Source: Lepidodermella squamata
Lineage: Eukaryota; Animalia; Gastrotricha
DNA: 64,000 nucleotides
Assembly: GCA_047495785.1 (NCBI GenBank)
Contig: JBLDXI010000073.1
Location: 124,001 to 188,000, forward strand
Direction of reading: 5' to 3'
The position numbers and the translations under genes were made by a program. This document shows positions 3,001 through 36,144 of this stretch, piece after piece (the stretch's first letter is position 1; each line of letters begins with the position of its first letter). The notes under the pieces were generated by a model. The model was given only the letters and a program-made list of their open reading frames with translations. It had not been told where the DNA came from and did no database searches.

Positions 3001-3520
3001 AGTAGCGCCCTGCCCACCCAGTGGGCCTTCGGAACCTTGCACGCCTTGGGGACCTTGCGAACCAAGCGGACCTTGCGGGCCTGAAAATCACGAATAAATT
3101 CATGCAAGCTTCAAACCTCAACTTCGAAGATCGCAACTGTACCTTGAGAACCTAGCGGGCCCTGATCTCCGGTTGCACCAGTCACTCCCGTCGCACCTGC
3201 AGCGGGGCAAAACCGAAGTAGCTCAAAGTTTCGAACAAGCTCGGCTCATTCACGTACCTTGTTGACCTGTGGCTCCATCAGCGCCTGAATGGTTTCACAA
3301 AACAAGAGAAATCGTAACCAAGAGCCTGGATCCTAGCTTCAAAGCTCACCTGTCGCTCCAGTAGCGCCCTGCCCACCCAGTGGGCCTTCGGAACCTTGCA
3401 CGCCTTGGGGACCTTGCGAACCAAGCGGACCTTGCGGGCCTGAAAATCACGAATAAATTCATGCAAGCTTCAAACCTCAACTTCGAAGATCGCAACTGTA
3501 CCTTGAGAACCTAGCGGGCC
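1..3520 (-). repeat. Tandem array of about 9.8 near-identical 359-bp units, each 3 exons (90+27+54 bp) and 3 introns (65+61+62 bp)
   Basis: ORF track recurs every 359 bp. Example exons 478-567, 386-412 and 271-324 are bounded by GT/AG on the minus strand and encode [57 protein letters not shown]. Confidence 0.95.
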
Positions 3521-6981: not shown

Positions 6982-7271
6982 CCAATGCCACCAAACAAGC
7001 CGATATGGACTTCTTAAAACCGGGGATAGCTGTTAAATTCTTGCCAAATGAATTTCCTAATATTCAAAGTTACCGTATTTCTCGAAAATATACACCAAGG
7101 CATATTTTTGACTGAACCAAACATTTTACGGGGTTGTTATCGGTGCGGTATATTTTCGAGAAATACGGTAACTTTGAATATTAGGAAATTCATTTGACAA
7201 GAATTTAAGAGCTATCCCCGGTTTTAAGAAGTCCATATCGGCTTGTTTGGTCTACAAAATGTGGCATTGGC
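6982..7271. mobile_element. Palindromic MITE-like / inverted-duplication element
   Basis: About 110-bp near-perfect inverted arms (6991-7103 vs 7148-7250). The core TACCGTATTTCTCGAAAATATA...TATATTTTCGAGAAATACGGTA (7071-7170) resembles Tc1/mariner-pogo MITE ends with TA flanks. Confidence 0.7.
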
Positions 7272-12887: not shown

Positions 12888-15800
12888 CTAAGCGTAGTTT
12901 GCCAGGCTTTCGAGCAGAATTTGTTGAACTGCGTTCCGGACTGTTTCGAGATCGAATGGGCCAGGAGGACCACGAGGGCCGGGAAGACCGATGCCGTTAC
13001 GACCAGCGGGACCAGAAGGACCAGCGGGACCAGTCGCGCCATCTCTACCAGAAGTACCAGGAAGGCCAACGCCAGTTGGACCAGGAAGGCCAACGCCAGT
13101 TGGACCAGGAAGGCCAACGCCAGTTGGACCAGGAAGGCCAACGCCAGTTGGACCAGTGGGACCAGTATCGCCGGCTCTTCCAGGGAGACCAACACCTGGT
13201 CGACCAGCAGAGCCCGTTGGGCCAGTCATGCCAATACCTGTCGGACCAGTAGGACCTGTGACACCATCCCTGCCATCTCGGCCAGCCGGACCAGCAGGGC
13301 CCATTGCGCCTGCAATACCGGTCGCACCATTGTTACCATTCCTACCGGTCGGACCAGTCGGACCAGTCACTCCTAGGTCACCTGAGAACACGTAAAATTA
13401 TTTTTAATAGTCAAAAGGCATTATCATCACCTTTCTGCCCCTTGTCTCCTTTAGGTGCCATATCTCCAGAAATGCCCTTGTCACCTAAAAACAAAAGGAA
13501 AGCACGCCATGAGACCATGATCTATCCGACGAAATTGGAAAAGATCCCTTGCGTACCGGCAATCATCGGACATTGATCGCAACTAAATAAAACTACGTTT
13601 TCCAACTCACCTTGCAGGCCTTGAGGACCTTGCGAACCAAGCGGACCTTGCGGGCCTGAAAATCACGAATAAATTCATGCAAGCTTCAAACCTCAACTTC
13701 GAAGATCGCAACTATACCTTGAGAACCTAGCGGGCCCTGATCTCCGGTTGCACCAGTCACTCCCGTCGCACCTGCAGCGGGGCAAAACCGAAGTAGCTCA
13801 AAGTTTCGAAGAAGCTCGGCTCATTCACGTACCTTGTTGACCTGTGGCTCCATCAGCGCCTGAATGGTTTCACAAAACAAGAGAAATCGTAACCAAGAGC
13901 CTGGATCCTAGCTTCAACGCTCACCTGTCGCTCCAGTAGCGCCCTGCCCACCCAGTGGGCCTTCGGAACCTTGCACGCCTTGGGGACCTTGAGCGCCAAC
14001 GACACCTTGCGGGCCTGAAAATCACGAATAAATTCATGCAAGCTTCAAACCTCAACTGCGAAGCTCAGAACTGTACCTTGAGAACCTAGCGGACCCTGTT
14101 CTCCAGTGGCACCAGTAACACCGGTCGCACCTGTAGCGGGGCGAAATCGGAACAAACGCCAGTTGAGAAGCTTGCTCTCGCTTCGAACCGAGCTCATTCA
14201 CGTACCTTGTTGACCTGTGGCTCCTTCAGCGCCTGCATGGTTTTACAAAACAAGAGAAATTCCAGTCAAGAGGCTTCATCATAGCTTCAATGCTCACCTG
14301 TCGATCCAGTAGGGCCTTGCGCACCCATGGGACCTTCGGAACCTGAAAGTGAGAGCAGAAATTTAGCATCCAGAATAATCGAATCTCGAAGCCCGAGATT
14401 CCCGAACTCACCAAGCACGCCTTGGGGACCTTGAGCGCCAACGACACCTTGCGGGCCTGAAAATCACGAATAAATTCATGCAAGCTTCAAACCTCAACTG
14501 CGAAGCTCAGAACTGTACCTTGAGAACCTAGCGGACCCTGTTCTCCAGTGGCACCAGGAACACCGGTCGCACCTGTAGCGGGGCGAAATCGGAACAAACG
14601 CCAGTTGAGAAGCTTGCTCTCGCTTCGAACCGAGCTCATTCACGTACCTTGTTGACCTGTGGCTCCTTCAGCGCCTGCATGGTTTTACAAAACAAGAGAA
14701 ATTCCAGTCAAGAGGCTTCATCATAGCTTCAATGCTCACCTGTCGATCCAGTAGGGCCTTGCGCACCCATGGGACCTTCGGAACCTGAAAGTGAGAGCAG
14801 AAAATTAGCATCCAGAATAATCGAATCTCGAAGCCCGAGATTCCCGAACTCACCAAGCACGCCTTGGGGACCTTGAGCGCCAACGACACCTTGCGGGCCT
14901 GAAAATCACGAATAAATTCATGCAAGCTTCAAACCTCAACTGCGAAGCTCAGAACTGTACCTTGAGAACCTAGCGGACCCTGTTCTCCAGTGGCACCAGT
15001 AACACCGGTCGCACCTGTAGCGGGGCGAAATCGGAACAAACGCCAGTTGAGAAGCTTGCTCTCGCTTCGAACCGAGCTCATTCACGTACCTTGTTGACCT
15101 GTGGCTCCTTCAGCGCCTGCATGGTTTTACAAAACAAGAGAAATTCCAGTCAAGAGGCTTCATCATAGCTTCAATGCTCACCTGTCGATCCAGTAGGGCC
15201 TTGCGCACCCATGGGACCTTCGGAACCTGAAAGTGAGAGCAGAAAATTAGCATCCAGAATAATCGAATCTCGAAACCCGAGATTCCCGAACTCACCAAGC
15301 ACGCCTTGGGGACCTTGAGCGCCAACGACACCTTGCGGGCCTGAAAATCACGAATAAATTCATGCAAGCTTCAAACCTCAACTGCGAAGCTCAGAACTGT
15401 ACCTTGAGAACCTAGCGGACCCTGTTCTCCAGTGGCACCAGGAACACCGGTCGCACCTGTAGCGGGGCGAAATCGGAACAAACGCCAGTTGAGAAGCTTG
15501 CTCTCGCTTCGAACCGAGCTCATTCACGTACCTTGTTGACCTGTGGCTCCTTCAGCGCCTGCATGGTTTTACAAAACAAGAGAAATTCCAGTCAAGAGGC
15601 TTCATCATAGCTTCAATGCTCACCTGTCGATCCAGTAGGGCCTTGCGCACCCATGGGACCTTCGGAACCTGAAAGTGAGAGCAGAAATTTAGCATCCAGA
15701 ATAATCGAATCTCGAAGCCCGAGATTCCCGAACTCACCAAGCACGCCTTGGGGACCTTGAGCGCCAACGACACCTTGCGGGCCTGAAAATCACGAATAAA

Positions 15801-18800
15801 TTCATGCAAGCTTCAAACCTCAACTGCGAAGCTCAGAACTGTACCTTGAGAACCTAGCGGACCCTGTTCTCCAGTGGCACCAGGAACACCGGTCGCACCT
15901 GTAGCGGGGCGAAATCGGAACAAACGCCAGTTGAGAAGCTTGCTCTCGCTTCGAACCGAGCTCATTCACGTACCTTGTTGACCTGTGGCTCCTTCAGCGC
16001 CTGCATGGTTTTACAAAACAAGAGAAATTCCAGTCAAGAGGCTTCATCATAGCTTCAATGCTCACCTGTCGATCCAGTAGGGCCTTGCGCACCCATGGGA
16101 CCTTCGGAACCTGAAAGTGAGAGCAGAAAATTAGCATCCAGAATAATCGAATCTCGAAGCCCGAGATTCCCGAACTCACCAAGCACGCCTTGGGGACCTT
16201 GAGCGCCAACGACACCTTGCGGGCCTGAAAATCACGAATAAATTCATGCAAGCTTCAAACCTCAACTGCGAAGCTCAGAACTGTACCTTGAGAACCTAGC
16301 GGACCCTGTTCTCCAGTGGCACCAGTAACACCGGTCGCACCTGTAGCGGGGCGAAATCGGAACAAACGCCAGTTGAGAAGCTTGCTCTCGCTTCGAACCG
16401 AGCTCATTCACGTACCTTGTTGACCTGTGGCTCCTTCAGCGCCTGCATGGTTTTACAAAACAAGAGAAATTCCAGTCAAGAGGCTTCATCATAGCTTCAA
16501 TGCTCACCTGTCGATCCAGTAGGGCCTTGCGCACCCATGGGACCTTCGGAACCTGAAAGTGAGAGCAGAAAATTAGCATCCAGAATAATCGAATCTCGAA
16601 ACCCGAGATTCCCGAACTCACCAAGCACGCCTTGGGGACCTTGAGCGCCAACGACACCTTGCGGGCCTGAAAATCACGAATAAATTCATGCAAGCTTCAA
16701 ACCTCAACTGCGAAGCTCAGAACTGTACCTTGAGAACCTAGCGGACCCTGTTCTCCAGTGGCACCAGTAACACCGGTCGCACCTGTAGCGGGGCGAAATC
16801 GGAACAAACGCCAGTTGAGAAGCTTGCTCTCGCTTCGAACCGAGCTCATTCACGTACCTTGTTGACCTGTGGCTCCTTCAGCGCCTGCATGGTTTTACAA
16901 AACAAGAGAAATTCCAGTCAAGAGGCTTCATCATAGCTTCAATGCTCACCTGTCGATCCAGTAGGGCCTTGCGCACCCATGGGACCTTCGGAACCTGAAA
17001 GTGAGAGCAGAAAATTAGCATCCAGAATAATCGAATCTCGAAGCCCGAGATTCCCGAACTCACCAAGCACGCCTTGGGGACCTTGAGCGCCAACGACACC
17101 TTGCGGGCCTGAAAATCACGAATAAATTCATGCAAGCTTCAAACCTCAACTGCGAAGCTCAGAACTGTACCTTGAGAACCTAGCGGACCCTGTTCTCCAG
17201 TGGCACCAGTAACACCGGTCGCACCTGTAGCGGGGCGAAATCGGAACAAACGCCAGTTGAGAAGCTTGCTCTCGCTTCGAACCGAGCTCATTCACGTACC
17301 TTGTTGACCTGTGGCTCCTTCAGCGCCTGCATGGTTTTACAAAACAAGAGAAATTCCAGTCAAGAGGCTTCATCATAGCTTCAATGCTCACCTGTCGATC
17401 CAGTAGGGCCTTGCGCACCCATGGGACCTTCGGAACCTGAAAGTGAGAGCAGAAATTTAGCATCCAGAATAATCGAATCTCGAAGCCCGAGATTCCCGAA
17501 CTCACCAAGCACGCCTTGGGGACCTTGAGCGCCAACGACACCTTGCGGGCCTGAAAATCACGAATAAATTCATGCAAGCTTCAAACCTCAACTGCGAAGC
17601 TCAGAACTGTACCTTGAGAACCTAGCGGACCCTGTTCTCCAGTGGCACCAGTAACACCGGTCGCACCTGTAGCGGGGCGAAATCGGAACAAACGCCAGTT
17701 GAGAAGCTTGCTCTCGCTTCGAACCGAGCTCATTCACGTACCTTGTTGACCTGTGGCTCCTTCAGCGCCTGCATGGTTTTACAAAACAAGAGAAATTCCA
17801 GTCAAGAGGCTTCATCATAGCTTCAATGCTCACCTGTCGATCCAGTAGGGCCTTGCGCACCCATGGGACCTTCGGAACCTGAAAGTGAGAGCAGAAAATT
17901 AGCATCCAGAATAATCGAATCTCGAAGCCCGAGATTCCCGAACTCACCAAGCACGCCTTGGGGACCTTGAGCGCCAACGACACCTTGCGGGCCTGAAAAT
18001 CACGAATAAATTCATGCAAGCTTCAAACCTCAACTGCGAAGCTCAGAACTGTACCTTGAGAACCTAGCGGACCCTGTTCTCCAGTGGCACCAGTAACACC
18101 GGTCGCACCTGTAGCGGGGCGAAATCGGAACAAACGCCAGTTGAGAAGCTTGCTCTCGCTTCGAACCGAGCTCATTCACGTACCTTGTTGACCTGTGGCT
18201 CCTTCAGCGCCTGCATGGTTTTACAAAACAAGAGAAATTCCAGTCAAGAGGCTTCATCATAGCTTCAATGCTCACCTGTCGATCCAGTAGGGCCTTGCGC
18301 ACCCATGGGACCTTCGGAACCTGAAAGTGAGAGCAGAAAATTAGCATCCAGAATAATCGAATCTCGAAGCCCGAGATTCCCGAACTCACCAAGCACGCCT
18401 TGGGGACCTTGAGCGCCAACGACACCTTGCGGGCCTGAAAATCACGAATAAATTCATGCAAGCTTCAAACCTCAACTGCGAAGCTCAGAACTGTACCTTG
18501 AGAACCTAGCGGACCCTGTTCTCCAGTGGCACCAGTAACACCGGTCGCACCTGTAGCGGGGCGAAATCGGAACAAACGCCAGTTGAGAAGCTTGCTCTCG
18601 CTTCGAACCGAGCTCATTCACGTACCTTGTTGACCTGTGGCTCCTTCAGCGCCTGCATGGTTTTACAAAACAAGAGAAATTCCAGTCAAGAGGCTTCATC
18701 ATAGCTTCAATGCTCACCTGTCGATCCAGTAGGGCCTTGCGCACCCATGGGACCTTCGGAACCTGAAAGTGAGAGCAGAAAATTAGCATCCAGAATAATC

Positions 18801-21800
18801 GAATCTCGAAGCCCGAGATTCCCGAACTCACCAAGCACGCCTTGGGGACCTTGAGCGCCAACGACACCTTGCGGGCCTGAAAATCACGAATAAATTCATG
18901 CAAGCTTCAAACCTCAACTGCGAAGCTCAGAACTGTACCTTGAGAACCTAGCGGACCCTGTTCTCCAGTGGCACCAGTAACACCGGTCGCACCTGTAGCG
19001 GGGCGAAATCGGAACAAACGCCAGTTGAGAAGCTTGCTCTCGCTTCGAACCGAGCTCATTCACGTACCTTGTTGACCTGTGGCTCCTTCAGCGCCTGCAT
19101 GGTTTTACAAAACAAGAGAAATTCCAGTCAAGAGGCTTCATCATAGCTTCAATGCTCACCTGTCGATCCAGTAGGGCCTTGCGCACCCATGGGACCTTCG
19201 GAACCTGAAAGTGAGAGCAGAAAATTAGCATCCAGAATAATCGAATCTCGAAGCCCGAGATTCCCGAACTCACCAAGCACGCCTTGGGGACCTTGAGCGC
19301 CAACGACACCTTGCGGGCCTGAAAATCACGAATAAATTCATGCAAGCTTCAAACCTCAACTGCGAAGCTCAGAACTGTACCTTGAGAACCTAGCGGACCC
19401 TGTTCTCCAGTGGCACCAGTAACACCGGTCGCACCTGTAGCGGGGCGAAATCGGAACAAACGCCAGTTGAGAAGCTTGCTCTCGCTTCGAACCGAGCTCA
19501 TTCACGTACCTTGTTGACCTGTGGCTCCTTCAGCGCCTGCATGGTTTTACAAAACAAGAGAAATTCCAGTCAAGAGGCTTCATCATAGCTTCAATGCTCA
19601 CCTGTCGATCCAGTAGGGCCTTGCGCACCCATGGGACCTTCGGAACCTGAAAGTGAGAGCAGAAAATTAGCATCCAGAATAATCGAATCTCGAAGCCCGA
19701 GATTCCCGAACTCACCAAGCACGCCTTGGGGACCTTGAGCGCCAACGACACCTTGCGGGCCTGAAAATCACGAATAAATTCATGCAAGCTTCAAACCTCA
19801 ACTGCGAAGCTCAGAACTGTACCTTGAGAACCTAGCGGACCCTGTTCTCCAGTGGCACCAGTAACACCGGTCGCACCTGTAGCGGGGCGAAATCGGAACA
19901 AACGCCAGTTGAGAAGCTTGCTCTCGCTTCGAACCGAGCTCATTCACGTACCTTGTTGACCTGTGGCTCCTTCAGCGCCTGCATGGTTTTACAAAACAAG
20001 AGAAATTCCAGTCAAGAGGCTTCATCATAGCTTCAATGCTCACCTGTCGATCCAGTAGGGCCTTGCGCACCCATGGGACCTTCGGAACCTGAAAGTGAGA
20101 GCAGAAAATTAGCATCCAGAATAATCGAATCTCGAAGCCCGAGATTCCCGAACTCACCAAGCACGCCTTGGGGACCTTGAGCGCCAACGACACCTTGCGG
20201 GCCTGAAAATCACGAATAAATTCATGCAAGCTTCAAACCTCAACTGCGAAGCTCAGAACTGTACCTTGAGAACCTAGCGGACCCTGTTCTCCAGTGGCAC
20301 CAGTAACACCGGTCGCACCTGTAGCGGGGCGAAATCGGAACAAACGCCAGTTGAGAAGCTTGCTCTCGCTTCGAACCGAGCTCATTCACGTACCTTGTTG
20401 ACCTGTGGCTCCTTCAGCGCCTGCATGGTTTTACAAAACAAGAGAAATTCCAGTCAAGAGGCTTCATCATAGCTTCAATGCTCACCTGTCGATCCAGTAG
20501 GGCCTTGCGCACCCATGGGACCTTCGGAACCTGAAAGTGAGAGCAGAAAATTAGCATCCAGAATAATCGAATCTCGAAGCCCGAGATTCCCGAACTCACC
20601 AAGCACGCCTTGGGGACCTTGAGCGCCAACGACACCTTGCGGGCCTGAAAATCACGAATAAATTCATGCAAGCTTCAAACCTCAACTGCGAAGCTCAGAA
20701 CTGTACCTTGAGAACCTAGCGGACCCTGTTCTCCAGTGGCACCAGTAACACCGGTCGCACCTGTAGCGGGGCGAAATCGGAACAAACGCCAGTTAAGAAG
20801 CTTGCTCTCGCTTCGAACCGAGCTCATTCACGTACCTTGTTGACCTGTGGCTCCTTCAGCGCCTGCATGGTTTTACAAAACAAGAGAAATTCCAGTCAAG
20901 AGGCTTCATCATAGCTTCAATGCTCACCTGTCGATCCAGTAGGGCCTTGCGCACCCATGGGACCTTCGGAACCTGAAAGTGAGAGCAGAAAATTAGCATC
21001 CAGAATAATCGAATCTCGAAGCCCGAGATTCCCGAACTCACCAAGCACGCCTTGGGGACCTTGAGCGCCAACGACACCTTGCGGGCCTGAAAATCACGAA
21101 TAAATTCATGCAAGCTTCAAACCTCAACTGCGAAGCTCAGAACTGTACCTTGAGAACCTAGCGGACCCTGTTCTCCAGTGGCACCAGTAACACCGGTCGC
21201 ACCTGTAGCGGGGCGAAATCGGAACAAACGCCAGTTGAGAAGCTTGCTCTCGCTTCGAACCGAGCTCATTCACGTACCTTGTTGACCTGTGGCTCCTTCA
21301 GCGCCTGCATGGTTTTACAAAACAAGAGAAATTCCAGTCAAGAGGCTTCATCATAGCTTCAATGCTCACCTGTCGATCCAGTAGGGCCTTGCGCACCCAT
21401 GGGACCTTCGGAACCTGAAAGTGAGAGCAGAAAATTAGCATCCAGAATAATCGAATCTCGAAGCCCGAGATTCCCGAACTCACCAAGCACGCCTTGGGGA
21501 CCTTGAGCGCCAACGACACCTTGCGGGCCTGAAAATCACGAATAAATTCATGCAAGCTTCAAACCTCAACTGCGAAGCTCAGAACTGTACCTTGAGAACC
21601 TAGCGGACCCTGTTCTCCAGTGGCACCAGTAACACCGGTCGCACCTGTAGCGGGGCGAAATCGGAACAAACGCCAGTTGAGAAGCTTGCTCTCGCTTCGA
21701 ACCGAGCTCATTCACGTACCTTGTTGACCTGTGGCTCCTTCAGCGCCTGCATGGTTTTACAAAACAAGAGAAATTCCAGTCAAGAGGCTTCATCATAGCT

Positions 21801-24800
21801 TCAATGCTCACCTGTCGATCCAGTAGGGCCTTGCGCACCCATGGGACCTTCGGAACCTGAAAGTGAGAGCAGAAAATTAGCATCCAGAATAATCGAATCT
21901 CGAAGCCCGAGATTCCCGAACTCACCAAGCACGCCTTGGGGACCTTGAGCGCCAACGACACCTTGCGGGCCTGAAAATCACGAATAAATTCATGCAAGCT
22001 TCAAACCTCAACTGCGAAGCTCAGAACTGTACCTTGAGAACCTAGCGGACCCTGTTCTCCAGTGGCACCAGTAACACCGGTCGCACCTGTAGCGGGGCGA
22101 AATCGGAACAAACGCCAGTTGAGAAGCTTGCTCTCGCTTCGAACCGAGCTCATTCACGTACCTTGTTGACCTGTGGCTCCTTCAGCGCCTGCATGGTTTT
22201 ACAAAACAAGAGAAATTCCAGTCAAGAGGCTTCATCATAGCTTCAATGCTCACCTGTCGATCCAGTAGGGCCTTGCGCACCCATGGGACCTTCGGAACCT
22301 GAAAGTGAGAGCAGAAATTTAGCATCCAGAATAATCGAATCTCGAAGCCCGAGATTCCCGAACTCACCAAGCACGCCTTGGGGACCTTGAGCGCCAACGA
22401 CACCTTGCGGGCCTGAAAATCACGAATAAATTCATGCAAGCTTCAAACCTCAACTGCGAAGCTCAGAACTGTACCTTGAGAACCTAGCGGACCCTGTTCT
22501 CCAGTGGCACCAGTAACACCGGTCGCACCTGTAGCGGGGCGAAATCGGAACAAACGCCAGTTGAGAAGCTTGCTCTCGCTTCGAACCGAGCTCATTCACG
22601 TACCTTGTTGACCTGTGGCTCCTTCAGCGCCTGCATGGTTTTACAAAACAAGAGAAATTCCAGTCAAGAGGCTTCATCATAGCTTCAATGCTCACCTGTC
22701 GATCCAGTAGGGCCTTGCGCACCCATGGGACCTTCGGAACCTGAAAGTGAGAGCAGAAATTTAGCATCCAGAATAATCGAATCTCGAAGCCCGAGATTCC
22801 CGAACTCACCAAGCACGCCTTGGGGACCTTGAGCGCCAACGACACCTTGCGGGCCTGAAAATCACGAATAAATTCATGCAAGCTTCAAACCTCAACTGCG
22901 AAGCTCAGAACTGTACCTTGAGAACCTAGCGGACCCTGTTCTCCAGTGGCACCAGTAACACCGGTCGCACCTGTAGCGGGGCGAAATCGGAACAAACGCC
23001 AGTTAAGAAGCTTGCTCTCGCTTCGAACCGAGCTCATTCACGTACCTTGTTGACCTGTGGCTCCTTCAGCGCCTGCATGGTTTTACAAAACAAGAGAAAT
23101 TCCAGTCAAGAGGCTTCATCATAGCTTCAATGCTCACCTGTCGATCCAGTAGGGCCTTGCGCACCCATGGGACCTTCGGAACCTGAAAGTGAGAGCAGAA
23201 AATTAGCATCCAGAATAATCGAATCTCGAAGCCCGAGATTCCCGAACTCACCAAGCACGCCTTGGGGACCTTGAGCGCCAACGACACCTTGCGGGCCTGA
23301 AAATCACGAATAAATTCATGCAAGCTTCAAACCTCAACTGCGAAGCTCAGAACTGTACCTTGAGAACCTAGCGGACCCTGTTCTCCAGTGGCACCAGTAA
23401 CACCGGTCGCACCTGTAGCGGGGCGAAATCGGAACAAACGCCAGTTGAGAAGCTTGCTCTCGCTTCGAACCGAGCTCATTCACGTACCTTGTTGACCTGT
23501 GGCTCCTTCAGCGCCTGCATGGTTTTACAAAACAAGAGAAATTCCAGTCAAGAGGCTTCATCATAGCTTCAATGCTCACCTGTCGATCCAGTAGGGCCTT
23601 GCGCACCCATGGGACCTTCGGAACCTGAAAGTGAGAGCAGAAAATTAGCATCCAGAATAATCGAATCTCGAAGCCCGAGATTCCCGAACTCACCAAGCAC
23701 GCCTTGGGGACCTTGAGCGCCAACGACACCTTGCGGGCCTGAAAATCACGAATAAATTCATGCAAGCTTCAAACCTCAACTGCGAAGCTCAGAACTGTAC
23801 CTTGAGAACCTAGCGGACCCTGTTCTCCAGTGGCACCAGTAACACCGGTCGCACCTGTAGCGGGGCGAAATCGGAACAAACGCCAGTTGAGAAGCTTGCT
23901 CTCGCTTCGAACCGAGCTCATTCACGTACCTTGTTGACCTGTGGCTCCTTCAGCGCCTGCATGGTTTTACAAAACAAGAGAAATTCCAGTCAAGAGGCTT
24001 CATCATAGCTTCAATGCTCACCTGTCGATCCAGTAGGGCCTTGCGCACCCATGGGACCTTCGGAACCTGAAAGTGAGAGCAGAAAATTAGCATCCAGAAT
24101 AATCGAATCTCGAAGCCCGAGATTCCCGAACTCACCAAGCACGCCTTGGGGACCTTGAGCGCCAACGACACCTTGCGGGCCTGAAAATCACGAATAAATT
24201 CATGCAAGCTTCAAACCTCAACTGCGAAGCTCAGAACTGTACCTTGAGAACCTAGCGGACCCTGTTCTCCAGTGGCACCAGTAACACCGGTCGCACCTGT
24301 AGCGGGGCGAAATCGGAACAAACGCCAGTTGAGAAGCTTGCTCTCGCTTCGAACCGAGCTCATTCACGTACCTTGTTGACCTGTGGCTCCTTCAGCGCCT
24401 GCATGGTTTTACAAAACAAGAGAAATTCCAGTCAAGAGGCTTCATCATAGCTTCAATGCTCACCTGTCGATCCAGTAGGGCCTTGCGCACCCATGGGACC
24501 TTCGGAACCTGAAAGTGAGAGCAGAAAATTAGCATCCAGAATAATCGAATCTCGAAGCCCGAGATTCCCGAACTCACCAAGCACGCCTTGGGGACCTTGA
24601 GCGCCAACGACACCTTGCGGGCCTGAAAATCACGAATAAATTCATGCAAGCTTCAAACCTCAACTGCGAAGCTCAGAACTGTACCTTGAGAACCTAGCGG
24701 ACCCTGTTCTCCAGTGGCACCAGTAACACCGGTCGCACCTGTAGCGGGGCGAAATCGGAACAAACGCCAGTTGAGAAGCTTGCTCTCGCTTCGAACCGAG

Positions 24801-27800
24801 CTCATTCACGTACCTTGTTGACCTGTGGCTCCTTCAGCGCCTGCATGGTTTTACAAAACAAGAGAAATTCCAGTCAAGAGGCTTCATCATAGCTTCAATG
24901 CTCACCTGTCGATCCAGTAGGGCCTTGCGCACCCATGGGACCTTCGGAACCTGAAAGTGAGAGCAGAAAATTAGCATCCAGAATAATCGAATCTCGAAGC
25001 CCGAGATTCCCGAACTCACCAAGCACGCCTTGGGGACCTTGAGCGCCAACGACACCTTGCGGGCCTGAAAATCACGAATAAATTCATGCAAGCTTCAAAC
25101 CTCAACTGCGAAGCTCAGAACTGTACCTTGAGAACCTAGCGGACCCTGTTCTCCAGTGGCACCAGTAACACCGGTCGCACCTGTAGCGGGGCGAAATCGG
25201 AACAAACGCCAGTTGAGAAGCTTGCTCTCGCTTCGAACCGAGCTCATTCACGTACCTTGTTGACCTGTGGCTCCTTCAGCGCCTGCATGGTTTTACAAAA
25301 CAAGAGAAATTCCAGTCAAGAGGCTTCATCATAGCTTCAATGCTCACCTGTCGATCCAGTAGGGCCTTGCGCACCCATGGGACCTTCGGAACCTGAAAGT
25401 GAGAGCAGAAAATTAGCATCCAGAATAATCGAATCTCGAAGCCCGAGATTCCCGAACTCACCAAGCACGCCTTGGGGACCTTGAGCGCCAACGACACCTT
25501 GCGGGCCTGAAAATCACGAATAAATTCATGCAAGCTTCAAACCTCAACTGCGAAGCTCAGAACTGTACCTTGAGAACCTAGCGGACCCTGTTCTCCAGTG
25601 GCACCAGTAACACCGGTCGCACCTGTAGCGGGGCGAAATCGGAACAAACGCCAGTTGAGAAGCTTGCTCTCGCTTCGAACCGAGCTCATTCACGTACCTT
25701 GTTGACCTGTGGCTCCTTCAGCGCCTGCATGGTTTTACAAAACAAGAGAAATTCCAGTCAAGAGGCTTCATCATAGCTTCAATGCTCACCTGTCGATCCA
25801 GTAGGGCCTTGCGCACCCATGGGACCTTCGGAACCTGAAAGTGAGAGCAGAAAATTAGCATCCAGAATAATCGAATCTCGAAGCCCGAGATTCCCGAACT
25901 CACCAAGCACGCCTTGGGGACCTTGAGCGCCAACGACACCTTGCGGGCCTGAAAATCACGAATAAATTCATGCAAGCTTCAAACCTCAACTGCGAAGCTC
26001 AGAACTGTACCTTGAGAACCTAGCGGACCCTGTTCTCCAGTGGCACCAGTAACACCGGTCGCACCTGTAGCGGGGCGAAATCGGAACAAACGCCAGTTGA
26101 GAAGCTTGCTCTCGCTTCGAACCGAGCTCATTCACGTACCTTGTTGACCTGTGGCTCCTTCAGCGCCTGCATGGTTTTACAAAACAAGAGAAATTCCAGT
26201 CAAGAGGCTTCATCATAGCTTCAATGCTCACCTGTCGATCCAGTAGGGCCTTGCGCACCCATGGGACCTTCGGAACCTGAAAGTGAGAGCAGAAAATTAG
26301 CATCCAGAATAATCGAATCTCGAAGCCCGAGATTCCCGAACTCACCAAGCACGCCTTGGGGACCTTGAGCGCCAACGACACCTTGCGGGCCTGAAAATCA
26401 CGAATAAATTCATGCAAGCTTCAAACCTCAACTGCGAAGCTCAGAACTGTACCTTGAGAACCTAGCGGACCCTGTTCTCCAGTGGCACCAGTAACACCGG
26501 TCGCACCTGTAGCGGGGCGAAATCGGAACAAACGCCAGTTGAGAAGCTTGCTCTCGCTTCGAACCGAGCTCATTCACGTACCTTGTTGACCTGTGGCTCC
26601 TTCAGCGCCTGCATGGTTTTACAAAACAAGAGAAATTCCAGTCAAGAGGCTTCATCATAGCTTCAATGCTCACCTGTCGATCCAGTAGGGCCTTGCGCAC
26701 CCATGGGACCTTCGGAACCTGAAAGTGAGAGCAGAAAATTAGCATCCAGAATAATCGAATCTCGAAGCCCGAGATTCCCGAACTCACCAAGCACGCCTTG
26801 GGGACCTTGAGCGCCAACGACACCTTGCGGGCCTGAAAATCACGAATAAATTCATGCAAGCTTCAAACCTCAACTGCGAAGCTCAGAACTGTACCTTGAG
26901 AACCTAGCGGACCCTGTTCTCCAGTGGCACCAGTAACACCGGTCGCACCTGTAGCGGGGCGAAATCGGAACAAACGCCAGTTGAGAAGCTTGCTCTCGCT
27001 TCGAACCGAGCTCATTCACGTACCTTGTTGACCTGTGGCTCCTTCAGCGCCTGCATGGTTTTACAAAACAAGAGAAATTCCAGTCAAGAGGCTTCATCAT
27101 AGCTTCAATGCTCACCTGTCGATCCAGTAGGGCCTTGCGCACCCATGGGACCTTCGGAACCTGAAAGTGAGAGCAGAAAATTAGCATCCAGAATAATCGA
27201 ATCTCGAAGCCCGAGATTCCCGAACTCACCAAGCACGCCTTGGGGACCTTGAGCGCCAACGACACCTTGCGGGCCTGAAAATCACGAATAAATTCATGCA
27301 AGCTTCAAACCTCAACTGCGAAGCTCAGAACTGTACCTTGAGAACCTAGCGGACCCTGTTCTCCAGTGGCACCAGTAACACCGGTCGCACCTGTAGCGGG
27401 GCGAAATCGGAACAAACGCCAGTTGAGAAGCTTGCTCTCGCTTCGAACCGAGCTCATTCACGTACCTTGTTGACCTGTGGCTCCTTCAGCGCCTGCATGG
27501 TTTTACAAAACAAGAGAAATTCCAGTCAAGAGGCTTCATCATAGCTTCAATGCTCACCTGTCGATCCAGTAGGGCCTTGCGCACCCATGGGACCTTCGGA
27601 ACCTGAAAGTGAGAGCAGAAAATTAGCATCCAGAATAATCGAATCTCGAAGCCCGTGATTCCCGAACTCACCAAGCACGCCTTGGGGACCTTGAGCGCCA
27701 ACGACACCTTGCGGGCCTGAAAATCACGAATAAATTCATGCAAGCTTCAAACCTCAACTGCGAAGCTCAGAACTGTACCTTGAGAACCTAGCGGACCCTG

Positions 27801-30800
27801 TTCTCCAGTGGCACCAGGAACACCGGTCGCACCTGTAGCGGGGCGAAATCGGAACAAACGCCAGTTGAGAAGCTTGCTCTCGCTTCGAACCGAGCTCATT
27901 CACGTACCTTGTTGACCTGTGGCTCCTTCAGCGCCTGCATGGTTTTACAAAACAAGAGAAATTCCAGTCAAGAGGCTTCATCATAGCTTCAATGCTCACC
28001 TGTCGATCCAGTAGGGCCTTGCGCACCCATGGGACCTTCGGAACCTGAAAGTGAGAGCAGAAATATAGCATCCAGAATAATCGAATCTCGAAGCCCGAGA
28101 TTCCCGAACTCACCAAGCACGCCTTGGGGACCTTGAGCGCCAACGACACCTTGCGGGCCTGAAAATCACGAATAAATTCATGCAAGCTTCAAACCTCAAC
28201 TGCGAAGCTCAGAACTGTACCTTGAGAACCTAGCGGACCCTGTTCTCCAGTGGCACCAGTAACACCGGTCGCACCTGTAGCGGGGCGAAATCGGAACAAA
28301 CGCCAGTTGAGAAGCTTGCTCTCGCTTCGAACCGAGCTCATTCACGTACCTTGTTGACCTGTGGCTCCTTCAGCGCCTGCATGGTTTTACAAAACAAGAG
28401 AAATTCCAGTCAAGAGGCTTCATCATAGCTTCAATGCTCACCTGTCGATCCAGTAGGGCCTTGCGCACCCATGGGACCTTCGGAACCTGAAAGTGAGAGC
28501 AGAAAATTAGCATCCAGAATAATCGAATCTCGAAGCCCGAGATTCCCGAACTCACCAAGCACGCCTTGGGGACCTTGAGCGCCAACGACACCTTGCGGGC
28601 CTGAAAATCACGAATAAATTCATGCAAGCTTCAAACCTCAACTGCGAAGCTCAGAACTGTACCTTGAGAACCTAGCGGACCCTGTTCTCCAGTGGCACCA
28701 GTAACACCGGTCGCACCTGTAGCGGGGCGAAATCGGAACAAACGCCAGTTGAGAAGCTTGCTCTCGCTTCGAACCGAGCTCATTCACGTACCTTGTTGAC
28801 CTGTGGCTCCTTCAGCGCCTGCATGGTTTTACAAAACAAGAGAAATTCCAGTCAAGAGGCTTCATCATAGCTTCAATGCTCACCTGTCGATCCAGTAGGG
28901 CCTTGCGCACCCATGGGACCTTCGGAACCTGAAAGTGAGAGCAGAAAATTAGCATCCAGAATAATCGAATCTCGAAGCCCGAGATTCCCGAACTCACCAA
29001 GCACGCCTTGGGGACCTTGAGCGCCAACGACACCTTGCGGGCCTGAAAATCACGAATAAATTCATGCAAGCTTCAAACCTCAACTGCGAAGCTCAGAACT
29101 GTACCTTGAGAACCTAGCGGACCCTGTTCTCCAGTGGCACCAGTAACACCGGTCGCACCTGTAGCGGGGCGAAATCGGAACAAACGCCAGTTGAGAAGCT
29201 TGCTCTCGCTTCGAACCGAGCTCATTCACGTACCTTGTTGACCTGTGGCTCCTTCAGCGCCTGCATGGTTTTACAAAACAAGAGAAATTCCAGTCAAGAG
29301 GCTTCATCATAGCTTCAATGCTCACCTGTCGATCCAGTAGGGCCTTGCGCACCCATGGGACCTTCGGAACCTGAAAGTGAGAGCAGAAATTTAGCATCCA
29401 GAATAATCGAATCTCGAAGCCCGAGATTCCCGAACTCACCAAGCACGCCTTGGGGACCTTGAGCGCCAACGACACCTTGCGGGCCTGAAAATCACGAATA
29501 AATTCATGCAAGCTTCAAACCTCAACTGCGAAGCTCAGAACTGTACCTTGAGAACCTAGCGGACCCTGTTCTCCAGTGGCACCAGTAACACCGGTCGCAC
29601 CTGTAGCGGGGCGAAATCGGAACAAACGCCAGTTGAGAAGCTTGCTCTCGCTTCGAACCGAGCTCATTCACGTACCTTGTTGACCTGTGGCTCCTTCAGC
29701 GCCTGCATGGTTTTACAAAACAAGAGAAATTCCAGTCAAGAGGCTTCATCATAGCTTCAATGCTCACCTGTCGATCCAGTAGGGCCTTGCGCACCCATGG
29801 GACCTTCGGAACCTGAAAGTGAGAGCAGAAAATTAGCATCCAGAATAATCGAATCTCGAAGCCCGAGATTCCCGAACTCACCAAGCACGCCTTGGGGACC
29901 TTGAGCGCCAACGACACCTTGCGGGCCTGAAAATCACGAATAAATTCATGCAAGCTTCAAACCTCAACTGCGAAGCTCAGAACTGTACCTTGAGAACCTA
30001 GCGGACCCTGTTCTCCAGTGGCACCAGTAACACCGGTCGCACCTGTAGCGGGGCGAAATCGGAACAAACGCCAGTTGAGAAGCTTGCTCTCGCTTCGAAC
30101 CGAGCTCATTCACGTACCTTGTTGACCTGTGGCTCCTTCAGCGCCTGCATGGTTTTACAAAACAAGAGAAATTCCAGTCAAGAGGCTTCATCATAGCTTC
30201 AATGCTCACCTGTCGATCCAGTAGGGCCTTGCGCACCCATGGGACCTTCGGAACCTGAAAGTGAGAGCAGAAAATTAGCATCCAGAATAATCGAATCTCG
30301 AAGCCCGAGATTCCCGAACTCACCAAGCACGCCTTGGGGACCTTGAGCGCCAACGACACCTTGCGGGCCTGAAAATCACGAATAAATTCATGCAAGCTTC
30401 AAACCTCAACTGCGAAGCTCAGAACTGTACCTTGAGAACCTAGCGGACCCTGTTCTCCAGTGGCACCAGTAACACCGGTCGCACCTGTAGCGGGGCGAAA
30501 TCGGAACAAACGCCAGTTGAGAAGCTTGCTCTCGCTTCGAACCGAGCTCATTCACGTACCTTGTTGACCTGTGGCTCCTTCAGCGCCTGCATGGTTTTAC
30601 AAAACAAGAGAAATTCCAGTCAAGAGGCTTCATCATAGCTTCAATGCTCACCTGTCGATCCAGTAGGGCCTTGCGCACCCATGGGACCTTCGGAACCTGA
30701 AAGTGAGAGCAGAAATTTAGCATCCAGAATAATCGAATCTCGAAGCCCGAGATTCCCGAACTCACCAAGCACGCCTTGGGGACCTTGAGCGCCAACGACA

Positions 30801-33779
30801 CCTTGCGGGCCTGAAAATCACGAATAAATTCATGCAAGCTTCAAACCTCAACTGCGAAGCTCAGAACTGTACCTTGAGAACCTAGCGGACCCTGTTCTCC
30901 AGTTGCACCAGTAACACCGGTCGGACCCGTCGGACCTGTCAGACCCTGAGGTCCAATTGAACCTAGTGATCCTGATAATACGAAAAACATATAATATTTG
31001 ATATCCTTGAAAAGGAAGCTAACCTTGTAGTCCTGGCAATCCCTGCAACCCTTGATTCCCTTGAATGCCTATGTTTTTGTGTAAAACGTTGCAATCCATA
31101 ATGTGATTTTTCATCAGTCTCACCAGTTGACCCTTGCACCCCAACATCGCCTAAAAATATCCAAGCTTCATGAATTTATTCTTTTTGATAAATAAAATAA
31201 TGTAACCTTTAGTTCCCTTGTCACCGGTAGGGCCAGTAGCGCCTGTTCAATAAAAGTTGTAATCCAGACATTCTTCCTTCGTAATTCGCTTACCATTCGA
31301 ACCCTTAGTACCTGCTGTACCAGTCGGGCCTGTCGGTCCAGTATTACCCAATGTTCCTGAAAAGTAAACAAGGGATTTAGGATTAAATCGATTTGAGCTC
31401 AATCTCCACCTTTCGAGCCTTGAATTCCTGTTGAACCAGTTGGCCCTGTCGGTCCAGTTGCCCCTAGCCTCCCTACATTTGCAATGCTTCAACTAAATAT
31501 TGAGATACAATATAAAGCCTTGCCTTGAGCTCCTTGAGGACCTTAAATAAAGAAACATGACTATGAATACAAAGAATATTTTTCACTTCCAGCAACTTAC
31601 CACTCGCGCCTAGAAAATTCAGAAATCAACGAAGATTTTGTCGAGTCCTGAAAACGCTTACCTTGAACTCCAGGTAGACCTTGTTCGCCAATAGGTCCAG
31701 TTGGCCCTGTTGGTCCTAAAGGTCCAGTAGGTCCTGTTGGGCCAGTCGGTCCGGTCGGTCCAGTTGGCGCGTCTGGCACAGGAGGAGCAGCAGCTGCTGG
31801 GTCTAATGCAATAAGACGATTAAAATGCAATATAAAAAAATGAAAAAAATGAAATTTAGCAATTCGAAAATTTTAAATTAGCTATAAATTTCATAAAAAT
31901 TATATTGAATATGAAAAATTGATAAAATTAGTTCACTTTTGGGAATTAGGAATTTGTTATATTAATATTAAAACTAAATTAATTTATTTGAAAAATTGAG
32001 ATTTTAAAACGAAATTTCAAGTTTCAATTTCAATTCTAAATTGAAAACTAAAAAATTGAAAATATATATTAAAATTAAAATTAATAATAAAATCGAAAAA
32101 TTCAGATTTTAAAACGAAATTTTTATTTTTCAATTTTGAAATTAAAAAATTAGGTTTTATTTGACCTACTAAAAAAAATGAAAAAATCTTACCAACAACC
32201 GGCCCAGCATCGCTAGGCGGATTCGTCGCTGTAGGATCAACCGCGTTAGGATCATCTATCGATAGGTCATTAGCACAATCACATTGACAACACTCTGAAT
32301 CATCCTCAATCTTGCCTGTAATATCACGCTTGCTACGACCGCCCCGGCCGCTCTGCAGATGTGCATTCACCAAATCCGTCCGAGCACAGTAGTGAATCGA
32401 CTGCTGACAGCACGTCACGCTTGTTTGCTTACAATCACCCGGGCACGCCGTGTTACCATCCAACAGAACAATCGAAGTGTAACCAGGCGAGCAGCTCGTA
32501 GCGCCAGTTATCGGGTTCGGAACGTTCAAATTCGAATCGGTACTCGACGAGAAGAACCCGGAAATTTCGCCATTTGCCACCGACGCGTTCCAGCACGCGA
32601 TTAAGCGGCAGGTTGACTTCAAATCGGCGGGGCTTTTCGGTTCGGAATTGCCGAGAATTCGAAACTCAACACCGTGGAAGCTACGGCAAAAGTGCGGCAT
32701 GGCCAGCGATGCGTCACAGGTCGTGAAAATTCCGCCGAAATTCGACGTTGGCTTCACGGCATTTGACACACATTGAGCGATGTAATGGCCGCATGTTGGC
32801 GTGTTGGGTTTCATCGGTTGTAGTAGGTAGTGGTCGTTTTGCGACGTGACGGCGCTTGGTTCGAAGCCGGTTGGGCACGATTTTTCGCCCGTGTGGCCGT
32901 TGATTTGACCGGGCGATTGGCACGGGCCGATTGTGTCCGTGAAAAAACCGCCGAATGCCATGAGCCGAGCGCGCGTGTTATCAGTCGCGAGGCCAAATTC
33001 GAACACCGCTGGAAAAATATTAGAAAATTATAAAAAAATAGTAAAAATAGCTTGAGAATTGAAAATTAAATTACAGGAATTAAATTAACGAATGAAAATT
33101 TATTGAAAATTTTTCCATATTTGGAATATTTTTCCACTGATTCAATAATTTTTTAATATTTCAATAAATTTCAAAAATTTCTCGAAAAATTGTTTATAAA
33201 AATCCGAACACATTTTTCGAATAATGTCTGTCAAACGAAAAAATTTTGTAAAATTGAAAATACTTCTGAATTTTTTCTTTTCAATTTTTCCTCAATTTAA
33301 TATTCATTTGACTCAATTCCTTTATTCAGAATTTTTTAATTTTTTCAATTTATTATTCCCTTTTTGGAAATTGAAAGGAAAGAAATTCTAGAAAGCTTGA
33401 TATTCGAATGACTAGTTCTAGGAATTTTTGAAATTTTGATTAAAAAATGTCCTCCAAGAAATCAATGTTTGTAACCCTGGATGATTCAGGTAAAATTTGC
33501 TAGAGAAAAATTCACGGCAAATCGCAAAAGCTTGAATCAATTGAAGCTATGAATCGCTTTCAAAGATTTTAAAAATTTAAATTAAATTATTTTCGGTTAT
33601 CATTTATTTTCGAAAAAATACCATGTGAAAAAGGAAATGTTTTTGAATTTTTTAGTTATCGAAAAAATATGCGGAAAAATCATTAAAATTCCTTATAGAG
33701 AGGTTTGATAGCAAAACTGACCACATAGAAGAACGGCGACTGAGAGCAAGCCGGTAGGCAGCAAACTTCCCCCAGCCAT
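12888..33779 (-). CDS. Giant collagen-like gene 2 (about 169 coding exons, about 2878 aa): signal peptide, MPEG1/Perforin-2 P2-like domain, RSKR, CCQCDC, about 2400-aa uninterrupted Gly-X-Y, short helical tail
   Basis: Exons 33722-33779 ([19 protein letters not shown]), 32193-33008, 31662-31802, 31601-31609, 31524-31541, 31410-31472, 31294-31356, 31207-31242, 31124-31150, 31024-31068, 30873-30971, 38 x (45+45+27+54), 13925-14014, 13833-13859, 13718-13771, 13611-13655, 13431-13484, 12888-13381. All introns are phase 1 and the summed CDS of 8637 nt is in frame. Confidence 0.9.
13063..13156 (-). repeat. 24-bp coding repeat (GPTGVGLP) x about 4 in the last collagen exon
   Basis: Direct repeats of ccaggaaggccaacgccagttgga give periodic G-X-G interruptions. 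Confidence 0.85.
14015..30920 (-). repeat. Tandem array of 38 near-identical 442-bp units, each 4 exons (45+45+27+54 bp) and 4 introns (69+65+75+62 bp)
   Basis: ORF track recurs every 442 bp from 14226 to 30580. Example exons 14412-14456, 14298-14342, 14206-14232 and 14077-14130 encode [57 protein letters not shown]. Confidence 0.97.
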
Positions 33780-34496
33780 TATTGTACGAAACCAAATAAG
33801 GACCTGATAAAAAGCCGGTATAAATTAACCTAAAGAATCCGCGACAGGGTAAACTATCAACTATAGTAAGGAAGTATCGAAATTCAGACAATAATCAAAG
33901 CGTTAAATTGAGAGTTCTAACCGACTGTTGCTGATTGTGCCCTTAAACAAACAGTCTTATAAGATGAACCGGAACCACATCATTAACTGCTACGAGTCCG
34001 CGCTGTTCAGTACACGATTCCATCATCTCGGCATTAATTATCGCGATCACGAGACCAAGCTCATCAATAAACGCATCGTATCAGTATTTTTCGATTCATT
34101 AAATAATAAATAATTGAATTTTCGAGAATTTATAAAAATAAATACCCGATTGATAAAACTCTCAATTTTTTGACCTAGTCTTCGATAATTATTCAAGATG
34201 CAAATTATTCGTCCTTTGATTTTTTTTCAAGTTTTTTTGAATTTTTAATTAGTTTTGAAATTTTTGAAAAATTTGGAATTCAAAATTTCATTTTTTCAAT
34301 TTTTTCGAATTTTTCATTTGTTTGAGATTATAACCATCTCCTTTTGTACAAAAAATCTCGCTCATGTTATATCATGCTGATGGCTTTGACTGGTTCTGAG
34401 TTGAAATCATTGGAGCGTGACTATTTTGAATAATTTAGCTCCCACCCATAGTTTCAAAACTTAGTTCCCATGCAGTACAAACTTGTTTTTCTGAAA

Positions 34497-36144
34497 ATGC
34501 TTCCGCCTCAATTTTTCGTGATTTTCGTCATTTTTTTGAAATCAATTAATAGCGAAGAAATTGTCGAACATAATTGTACACATGCCGTGGTTGAACCTGA
34601 ACCAAGTCCGCCTTTCAGCCTCGAATTACTCCAAGCAGCTTTTGCCGGGAATTCGGCTGAAATCACGCGAATTGTGAAAGAGCATGGCAGGGTTGTTGTT
34701 AATTCGCCAAATCAAGACGACGAGGGCGTGACTGCGTTGATGATCGCGGCTGAGAATGGGCAAGTCGAGGCGGCAAGGTTGCTGCTGAGCTACGGCGCCA
34801 GGGTGAATGCGAGAGATCGAAATGGATATTCGGCTCTGATGCGAGCGACTCGGGTTCTGGACCAAAAATCGACCATTGTTCGGCTGCTTCTCAATAAAGG
34901 TACAAGAAATATCAATTCTGTCCCGAATTCACGTTTTACCACCATCGATTGGTCTTTTCTGAAATTTAAAAAAATATTTCAAAATTAAAATTGAAAATTA
35001 AAATTAAAATTTTTACCCACTTTTATCTCTGTTTTCGATCGATAAAGTTCAATTTTTTATTTTTCAAGCTCAAGCAATTAATTTGAAGATGGATTTTAAT
35101 TTTGATTTATTATTTTTTCAAAATATCAAAATTTTCAAAATTTATTTTTCAAAAATTGGATTAAAAAAAATATTTTTAGCGATTTCAGCTTCTTGCTCAC
35201 GATTCTTGATCGTTTCTCACCCCGCTGTGCAAAGACTTTTTATTTTAGCTCCAGATACCATTGTAGCTAGGTTGAATCATTTGATGATGGCTTCGAAAAC
35301 TGCTGAGATCGGAAAAATCACTGAATTTGAAAATCGATATCGACTCTGCTGGCTGAAGTAAAACTCGAAGGGAACTTTTCAAGTTGACATTGATTTTAGC
35401 GAAATAGCTCCAAAAATTAAGACGATCGAAAGTTTACGATTATTTTAGGACGGTTAACTTCCCAAATTCATATCGGTTTAAAATCCATCAAAACAATTTT
35501 TGAAAATTTTCAGAAAAATATAGGATATAGGATAGGATAGGAAAAATATATTCAGGGGGAAATAATCTCTTGCGCTCGGTCAGATTCAACTCATGGAATT
35601 AGAAACAGTTCAAAATTTATTATTTTAGTTTTCAAATTTGAAATTGAAACTTTTTTAAAAATTTAAAAATTTAAAAATAAATGAAGATGATTCCTGATTT
35701 TTGTATTTATTTTTTTACTTTATTTTAGGCGCAATTTCGACGTTTAAAGGCATCGATGGGTGGTCTGCGTTGACTCTAGCCGCTCGTAACGCCCGTTCGG
35801 ACCTGGTTCGCCTGCTCATCGAACAGGGCGGGTGTTACGTTGACGACCGTACGAACAACGGCTGGACGGCCCTAACGTGGGCTTCGTACCACGGCCTCAA
35901 CGATTCTGTCGAGCTGCTACTGGACAACGGCGCCCGGGTGAACGCGCGCACCCATTTGGGTGACACGCCGTTGAGTTGGGCGGCTGCCAAGTGCCACCCT
36001 GAGGTTGTGGAAACCCTGATTCGGCATGGCGCCGATGTGAATGCTAGGCACTACCTAGCGCCGGGTCGGACGGCGTTAACATGGTCGTTTTTGGTGCACT
36101 GCAAGGCTGTTAGGCTCATTTTACTTGATAACGGCGCTGAATAA
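34497..36144 (+). CDS. Ankyrin-repeat protein with an N-terminal signal-peptide-like segment (2 exons: 34497-34899, 35729-36144)
   Basis: MLPPQFFVIFVIFLKSINSEE; ankyrin motifs GVTALMIAA, GYSALMRA, GWSALTLAA, GWTALTWA, GDTPLSWAA; phase-1 GT-AG intron; AATAAA after the stop. Confidence 0.85.

Follow-up and report, generated by a model that had tools for sequence, protein, structure and literature searches.

A giant collagen gene with an N-terminal P2-like domain in the gastrotrich Lepidodermella squamata

Results

A giant collagen gene with a folded N-terminal region

The stretch of DNA analyzed here comprises 64,000 nt of the Lepidodermella squamata (Gastrotricha) genome (assembly GCA_047495785.1, contig JBLDXI010000073.1, positions 124,001-188,000, forward strand); it is referred to as the window, and all positions given are window positions unless another locus is named. 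It contains, on the minus strand, a gene in which a domain resembling the P2 domain of perforin-2 (MPEG1) is followed by an exceptionally long collagen helix, hereafter the P2-collagen gene. A first-pass annotation of the same stretch had described a P2-like domain without a MACPF domain that is joined to collagen behind a furin site, and had called this architecture unfamiliar. The motifs it quoted from exon 2 were all found by sequence reading, including RSKR at 32326-32337 and ECCQCDC at 32275-32295.

Direct reading placed exon 1 at 33722-33779, where an ATG opens a hydrophobic signal-like peptide of 19 codons plus one base that ends at a GT donor in phase 1. Exon 2 (32193-33008) is flanked by AG at 33010-33009 (acceptor) and GT at 32192-32191 (donor). 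It begins and ends in phase 1, matching exon 1, and is open throughout its 271 whole codons and two split codons. It encodes the P2-like domain, the convertase-type site, the Cys cluster, and an acidic Pro-rich linker. Exon 3 (31662-31802) has an AG acceptor in phase with exon 2 and no start codon of its own; it completes the Pro/Ala linker and opens the Gly-X-Y repeat. Then follow 164 Gly-X-Y mini-exons (13611-31609), all in phase 1, which were delimited by a tandem repeat finder, an exon scan, and the chained model. The last two exons (12888-13484) contain an interrupted Gly-X-Y region with (GVGLPGPT)x4 and end in an amphipathic C-terminal tail of 24 residues before the TAG stop codon at 12888-12890.

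The gene model, built as a chain of Gly-X-Y exons between AG and GT in phase 1, comprised 169 exons and 2878 codons without an in-frame stop and with a single GC donor (31524). The long unbroken Gly-X-Y series thereby lies in the same frame as the N-terminal domain. Residues 306-2645, encoded by exon 3 and the mini-exons, form 780 uninterrupted Gly-X-Y triplets. A triple helix usually rises by 0.286 nm per residue, and the calculated helix length is thus about 0.67 micrometre. The bulk of the helix derives from a 442-bp unit of four exons coding for 57 residues, which the tandem repeat finder detected in 38.4 copies of 99% identity at 13973-30927 on the minus strand. The composition of the helix is acidic, with almost no Lys, Arg, or Y-position Pro, the Y position being filled by Thr and Gln. 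The last exon matched Pfam Collagen with an E value of 4.9e-13. A contig from the public reads of run X1 spans 31500-34000 with zero differences to the window; it provides no independent support, because these reads are possibly the source of the assembly itself.

Short, amphipathic helix-like tails directly after the last Gly-X-Y triplet were observed in the window (12891-12962) and in two further loci of this type, L002 (about 3100-3229) and L005 (about 5830-5902 and 7100-7171). The tail-bearing collagens are members of the P2-collagen family and a neighboring collagen in L005. Such a tail may serve as a trimerization signal or nucleation site.

Sequence comparisons of the N-terminal domain

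The three-repeat domain occupies 32371-32964 (minus strand, model residues about 35-232), as delimited by PDB profiles, hhalign, and AlphaFold with structure searches. Translated exon 2 includes AFGGFF...[23 protein letters not shown] as well as ISGFFS...[19 protein letters not shown], and the pro-region as a whole (residues 20-239) has 14 Cys. A Pfam search of exon 2 identified no family at E values up to 10. MPEG1 was the best match in every sequence search of the PDB, with E values of 0.039 for the single exon 2 sequence, 0.0036 for a profile of exon 2 and one paralogue, 1.8e-4 for a profile of four family members, and 3e-4 for a profile of six family members (next match 0.39); in the profile searches, only MPEG1 entries scored below 0.1.

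HMMER, run against 1.84 billion cluster representatives, retrieved two close relatives from metagenome contigs, P0001 (E 1e-17) and P0002 (E 4e-15), and, at E values of 1e-4 to 1e-3, the MACPF proteins P0008, P0009, and P0011, the last of which is from a nematode; these were matched in the region that follows the MACPF domain. The search also yielded bacterial tandem-repeat proteins. When six collagen-linked domains were compared with four MACPF-linked domains, one of them from the L. squamata genome itself (contig C30), hhalign gave a probability of 98.7% with an E value of 4.2e-16, and the two sets were collinear over 156 columns. The MACPF-linked set, searched against the PDB, matched MPEG1 only. 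Homologous-protein searches with the single sequence and with the six-sequence alignment gave no match; they are regarded as uninformative, as the second of them missed even P0001 and P0002, although both are present in the collection. A feature search of the ESM Atlas with exon 2 gave no usable match.

In an alignment of 10 sequences the three repeats were collinear with those of MACPF-linked P2 domains, and one Gly, one Asn, and two Cys recurred in each repeat. The Cys columns C44/C79, C107/C138, and C172/C200 (exon 2 numbering) were invariant or nearly so. Repeat 2 deviates from this pattern: its Asn column varies, C138 falls just short of invariance, and the NPxTG half is degenerate in this protein. 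The P2 domain of perforin-2 has been described as pseudo-threefold, with three strands and one conserved disulfide per repeat (PMC6989145), and the recurring Gly/Asn/Cys pattern fits this description.

Like the P2 domain of MPEG1 (PDB 6SB1, 6SB4, and 6U23; PMC6989145, PMC6753088), the L. squamata domain consists of three tandem repeats in which FGGx[FY] is followed by NPxTGxxSCPxG[YF] and a later Cys, with a conserved Cys pair per repeat. It differs by extra Cys in repeat 3 and by the collagen helix that comes after the domain. In contrast to the MPEG1 protein, the P2-collagen gene lacks the MACPF domain, the EGF-like linker, the C-terminal tail/L-domain, and the transmembrane helix. No MACPF was found to be encoded in the gene, with exon 2 giving no Pfam match and exon 1 coding only for a signal-like peptide, in agreement with the first-pass annotation; the MACPF genes of L. 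squamata are located elsewhere in the genome. An assignment as MPEG1 orthologue was rejected on account of the missing MACPF domain.

Predicted structure of the N-terminal domain

AlphaFold modeling with two sequences was unusable, with a predicted local distance difference test score (pLDDT) of 39. With ten sequences, all five models agreed, with a pLDDT of 78.8 and a predicted template modeling score of 0.80. In the Foldseek comparison of this model with the PDB, the first 15 matches were all MPEG1 (E values from 2e-4, probability up to 0.99), after which the probability fell to 0.03. VIA-align superpositions on MPEG1 chains gave Z scores of 8.8 (3.9 Å over 114 residues, 26% identity), 8.6, 7.8, and 7.5. 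A scan of 48,161 representative chains, run independently of Foldseek, identified 10 with Z ≥2; the best two were MPEG1 (Z 7.8 and 6.2), followed by the TgPLP1 APC-beta domain, the beta domains of Photorhabdus MACPF and Mpf2Ba1, and the MABP domain of MVB12B. The structure search of the ESM Atlas also gave MPEG1 first, so that MPEG1 P2 ranked at the top in three structure libraries. Taken with the sequence comparisons, the predicted structure identifies the N-terminal domain as a genuine though diverged representative of the P2 class, as the first-pass annotation had suspected.

A family of P2-collagens

In three paralogues from the L. squamata genome (one on contig C34, two on contig C10) the domain and the Gly-X-Y repeat are encoded within one continuous open exon. 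The metagenome relatives give a similar picture: the domain open reading frame (ORF) of gene P0013 ends in two Gly-X-Y triplets (GAKGEKG), with long Gly-X-Y ORFs starting within about 100 bases, and in gene P0012 Gly-X-Y ORFs lie just downstream of the domain ORF. These relatives carrying the domain together with Gly-X-Y settle the domain-collagen architecture, and the fusion of the P2-like domain to collagen is judged to be real from the paralogues and from the stop-free frame of the 169-exon model.

At least four genes of the family are present in the L. squamata genome, and a related metagenome organism has two. This organism is a close relative, as the neighboring kinesin is 96% identical in the motor and 76% in the tail. 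The P2-like domains of the two organisms are only about 30% identical, and comparison with the kinesin values thus points to a fast-evolving family. Two pattern scans of metagenome contigs from the Joint Genome Institute revealed no further P2-collagen members. Neither for the P2-collagen architecture nor for the P2 domain itself was a Pfam model found. In the literature searched, the P2 domain was described only within perforin-2, as its ancillary part that binds membranes; collagen was mentioned in none of the listed perforin-2 publications on the P2 domain, and a single, unrelated paper contained both 'MABP domain' and 'collagen'. The P2-collagens are accordingly regarded, from the sequences compared, as a lineage-restricted family with a domain architecture new for both protein classes, and the first-pass annotation had been right to find it unfamiliar.

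The convertase-type site and the Cys cluster

RSKR (32326-32337, minus strand) has the form R-X-K/R-R of a proprotein convertase-type site. Its immediate context is GRGGRSKR followed by DITG; this Gly/Arg-rich stretch separates the last Cys of the domain from the CCxCxC cluster. The cluster, ECCQCDC (32275-32295), contributes four Cys to each chain; it lies in an acidic spacer of pI 4.05 immediately before the helix and may act as an interchain knot. The genome contains at least 10 matches to the P_proprotein domain of kexin/furin-type convertases. No other copy of the RSKR/CCQCDC spacer was found in the genome, and the spacer is unique to this gene. In the two metagenome relatives, RARR or RNRR lies in front of the domain and not behind it, so that the domain would remain attached to the collagen after a cut there.

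A furin/kexin-type convertase gene (Peptidase_S8 plus P_proprotein; L006, 2091-4061) was observed about 4 kb from the P0013 gene of the metagenome relative. This vicinity is probably a coincidence.

P2 repeats in other settings

When the ten best-scoring MACPF loci in the L. squamata genome were scanned with strict motifs, no P2 motif was found. A profile search of the genome identified one perforin-2-like gene with MACPF and P2 (L023, G000:C30:653501-656893, minus strand), the MACPF part of which is split by one in-frame TGA. In two near-identical genes, L021 (G000:C29:3791419-3794814) and L022 (C46:432596-435991, minus strand), a signal peptide precedes a P2-like domain of three repeats, which is followed by a transmembrane helix and a short tail; MACPF is lacking, and Pfam gave no match. 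At L024 (G000:C46:1797724-1801047) a long open frame contains Sushi and DUF7587 domains and two P2-type repeats at its end. P0003, P0004, P0007, and P0010 (Myxococcota and metagenome) consist of many tandem copies of an approximately 45-residue unit, FGGxY...NPxTGxxSCPxGY; on the basis of these arrays, the P2 repeat exists as a free repeat in bacteria.

The other MACPF-less P2 proteins (L021, L022, and L024, and P0003 and P0010 of the Myxococcota) thus share the repeat unit with the P2-collagens but have no collagen helix. They matched the collagen-family profile at E values of 1e-8 to 6e-5, compared with 1e-43 or better within the family.

A tandem sister gene and the surrounding region

Gene B (1-5269, minus strand), which follows the P2-collagen gene downstream on the same strand, is a collagen gene with a 359-bp array. 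Its exon 1 (5212-5269) is a paralogous signal-peptide exon that shares the donor and has a mean column identity of 83%, and its early helix exons, starting at about 4392, are paralogous to those of the P2-collagen gene. DNA alignment revealed a relic of the P2 exon, comprising its first approximately 50 bases, at 4574-4623 (minus strand) in intron 1 of gene B; the acceptor AG is lost, and the homology stops after the relic. By our reading, exon 1 of gene B would join straight to a Gly-X-Y exon in the correct phase, and the relic marks gene B as a natural domain-loss paralogue.

The two tandem collagen genes have conserved a Gly-X-Y exon of 18 bases that ends at a GC donor (31524-31541 and 4113-4130, minus strand). 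In each, it is adjoined by a 9-base micro-exon, located at 31601-31609 in the P2-collagen gene. Between the two genes, the minus strand contains a weak C-type lectin-like ORF at 7717-8091, whose Pfam E value of 0.008 misses the cut-off, and an EGF-like Cys pattern (about 9231-9350). Upstream of the P2-collagen gene, ankyrin-repeat ORFs lie on the opposite strand (34470-36141, plus strand), the first with a signal-like N terminus.

Discussion

The locus most probably harbors an intact gene for a secreted giant collagen with an N-terminal domain of the P2 class, which belongs to a small, fast-evolving P2-collagen family. From the N to the C terminus, the predicted protein would consist of a signal-like peptide, a disulfide-rich, three-repeat beta-prism domain of the P2 (MABP) type, the RSKR site, the acidic CCxCxC spacer, an uninterrupted triple helix of the length calculated above, and the short amphipathic tail. 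The chains would trimerize, possibly nucleated at the C-terminal tail shared with the L002 and L005 collagens. In most family members the P2-like domain presumably stays on the chain, in which case the trimer would bear three heads at its N-terminal end. In the member studied here, and in this one alone, a kexin/furin-type convertase may cut after RSKR; the head would then be released or serve as N-propeptide, and the Cys cluster would staple the new N terminus of the trimer. We regard this cleavage as an evenly balanced proposition.

Several observations weigh against parts of this interpretation. Among public runs no RNA run containing the locus was found, the sole run with the locus consisting of DNA contigs, and the splicing of exons 1 to 3 and the expression of the gene are therefore presumed. 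The copy number of the 99%-identical array depends on the assembly and may reflect misassembly. With respect to the fold, the Foldseek template modeling score to MPEG1 was just 0.27-0.29, and the superposition on solved P2 domains was partial, covering about half of the domain (approximately 110 residues) at one time; this is in part explained by the threefold repeats, which allow several registers. The comparison with the perforin-2 structures thus placed MPEG1 first but with incomplete overlap. With respect to function, repeat 1 of MPEG1 bears a 45-Å basic, hydrophobic-tipped hairpin, the deletion of which abolishes binding to anionic lipids (PMC6989145, PMC6753088). This long insertion is absent from the L. 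squamata domain both in the alignment and in the AlphaFold model, and the domain is mildly acidic (pI 6.1; 12 Lys plus Arg versus 15 Asp plus Glu). As a consequence, lipid binding is not transferable from MPEG1. The earlier idea of a lipid- or glycan-binding module is weakened for lipids. Finally, the Gly-X-Y exon series of gene B is open without a P2 domain, and the domain is thus dispensable for making such a collagen, if gene B is functional.

It is highly improbable that the fusion is an artefact of the gene model, with exon 2 being a small, separate secreted P2-like gene upstream of an independent collagen gene. The missing RNA run would allow this, and a prokaryotic gene caller had predicted P0001 and P0002 to be separate proteins of about 300 residues. 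However, exon 2 has no stop before its GT donor and its phase matches that of exon 3, which cannot start on its own; the paralogues hold domain and Gly-X-Y in one exon, and the seemingly stand-alone metagenome ORFs end in, or adjoin, Gly-X-Y. More weight has to be given to the view that the domain is never cut, with RSKR being fortuitous or unused and the protein forming a permanent three-headed stalk for recognition or anchoring, like its paralogues; we place its probability somewhat below even. The three paralogues pass directly from the domain to Gly-X-Y with neither RSKR nor the Cys cluster, the two metagenome relatives likewise have no basic site between domain and helix, and RSKR and the Cys cluster are conserved in no relative. 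By a rough estimate of our own, an R-x-[KR]-R motif is expected by chance in 271 residues with a probability of a few percent. Against an uncut domain speak the full R-X-K-R site, located precisely after the last Cys of the domain and before the Cys cluster, and the many kexin/furin-type convertases encoded in the genome. Because the spacer is unique to this gene and the paralogues run directly from domain to helix, release of the domain by a convertase is plausibly peculiar to this member and no trait of the family as a whole. The furin site and Cys knot of the first-pass annotation thus exist as motifs in this gene but do not extend to the family as a rule, and from its overall interpretation it is the P2-plus-collagen part that stands.

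What the domain would do was considered in addition. In analogy to the ancillary domains of pore-formers, it might recognize a surface, be it of a membrane, a glycan, or a microbe, and among the roles considered this is the likeliest, although its probability is placed clearly below even. A serious rival of slightly lower probability is a ligand-free domain, which would act as a propeptide for folding, registration, or prevention of assembly, as do the N-propeptides of fibrillar procollagens and the pro-regions of cuticle collagens in nematodes. The order of pro-region, dibasic site, Cys cluster, and helix is that of nematode cuticle collagens, and both the missing lipid-binding hairpin and the open, domain-less gene B are in line with a propeptide. 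On the other hand, neither Col_cuticle_N nor any other family was matched in Pfam, the other members cannot lose the domain at that place, and the Cys and Gly/Asn pattern is common to the collagen-linked and MACPF-linked forms, an argument for a conserved fold that has a surface function. Bolder still, and distinctly improbable, would be the reading of the P2-collagens as an independent invention of a 'defence collagen', in which, by analogy, a perforin-2-derived recognition module is trimerized on a stalk for microbial or membrane surfaces; in the member studied here, a convertase would release a soluble head and the 0.67-micrometre rod would enter the matrix or cuticle.

Two groups of known collagens invite comparison with the proposed P2-collagen. 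Nematode cuticle collagens are characterized by Pfam Col_cuticle_N and by an RX(K/R)R site that is cut by the kexin-like protease BLI-4. The P2-collagen gene shares with them the pro-region, dibasic convertase site, Cys cluster, and Gly-X-Y in this order; it differs in the absence of Col_cuticle_N (Pfam, E up to 10), in a folded pro-region of about 220 residues, and in its 780 unbroken triplets and 169 exons, in contrast to their short interrupted blocks. An assignment to the nematode-type cuticle collagens was rejected for want of a Col_cuticle_N match. Collectins, ficolins, and C1q have C-terminal heads with C-type lectin, fibrinogen, or C1q folds on stalks of tens of triplets. They resemble the P2-collagens in presenting a globular, recognition-type domain on a collagen stalk, with heads multiplied by trimerization, whereas the putative recognition head of the protein described here is N-terminal, of P2 fold, and placed on a stalk of 780 triplets.

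With the P2-collagens, the P2 domain emerges as a mobile module in four settings: in collagens, in a small membrane-anchored protein, beside a Sushi domain, and in myxobacterial tandem arrays. The locus and its relatives offer a natural comparison set of non-cuttable heads (the paralogues), a head with a convertase site (the P2-collagen gene of the window), and a tandem sister collagen without a head (gene B). Should the heads bind surfaces, the P2-collagens would add a novel class of recognition collagen from a group of animals that has received very little study; should they bind none, they would represent a new type of collagen propeptide.

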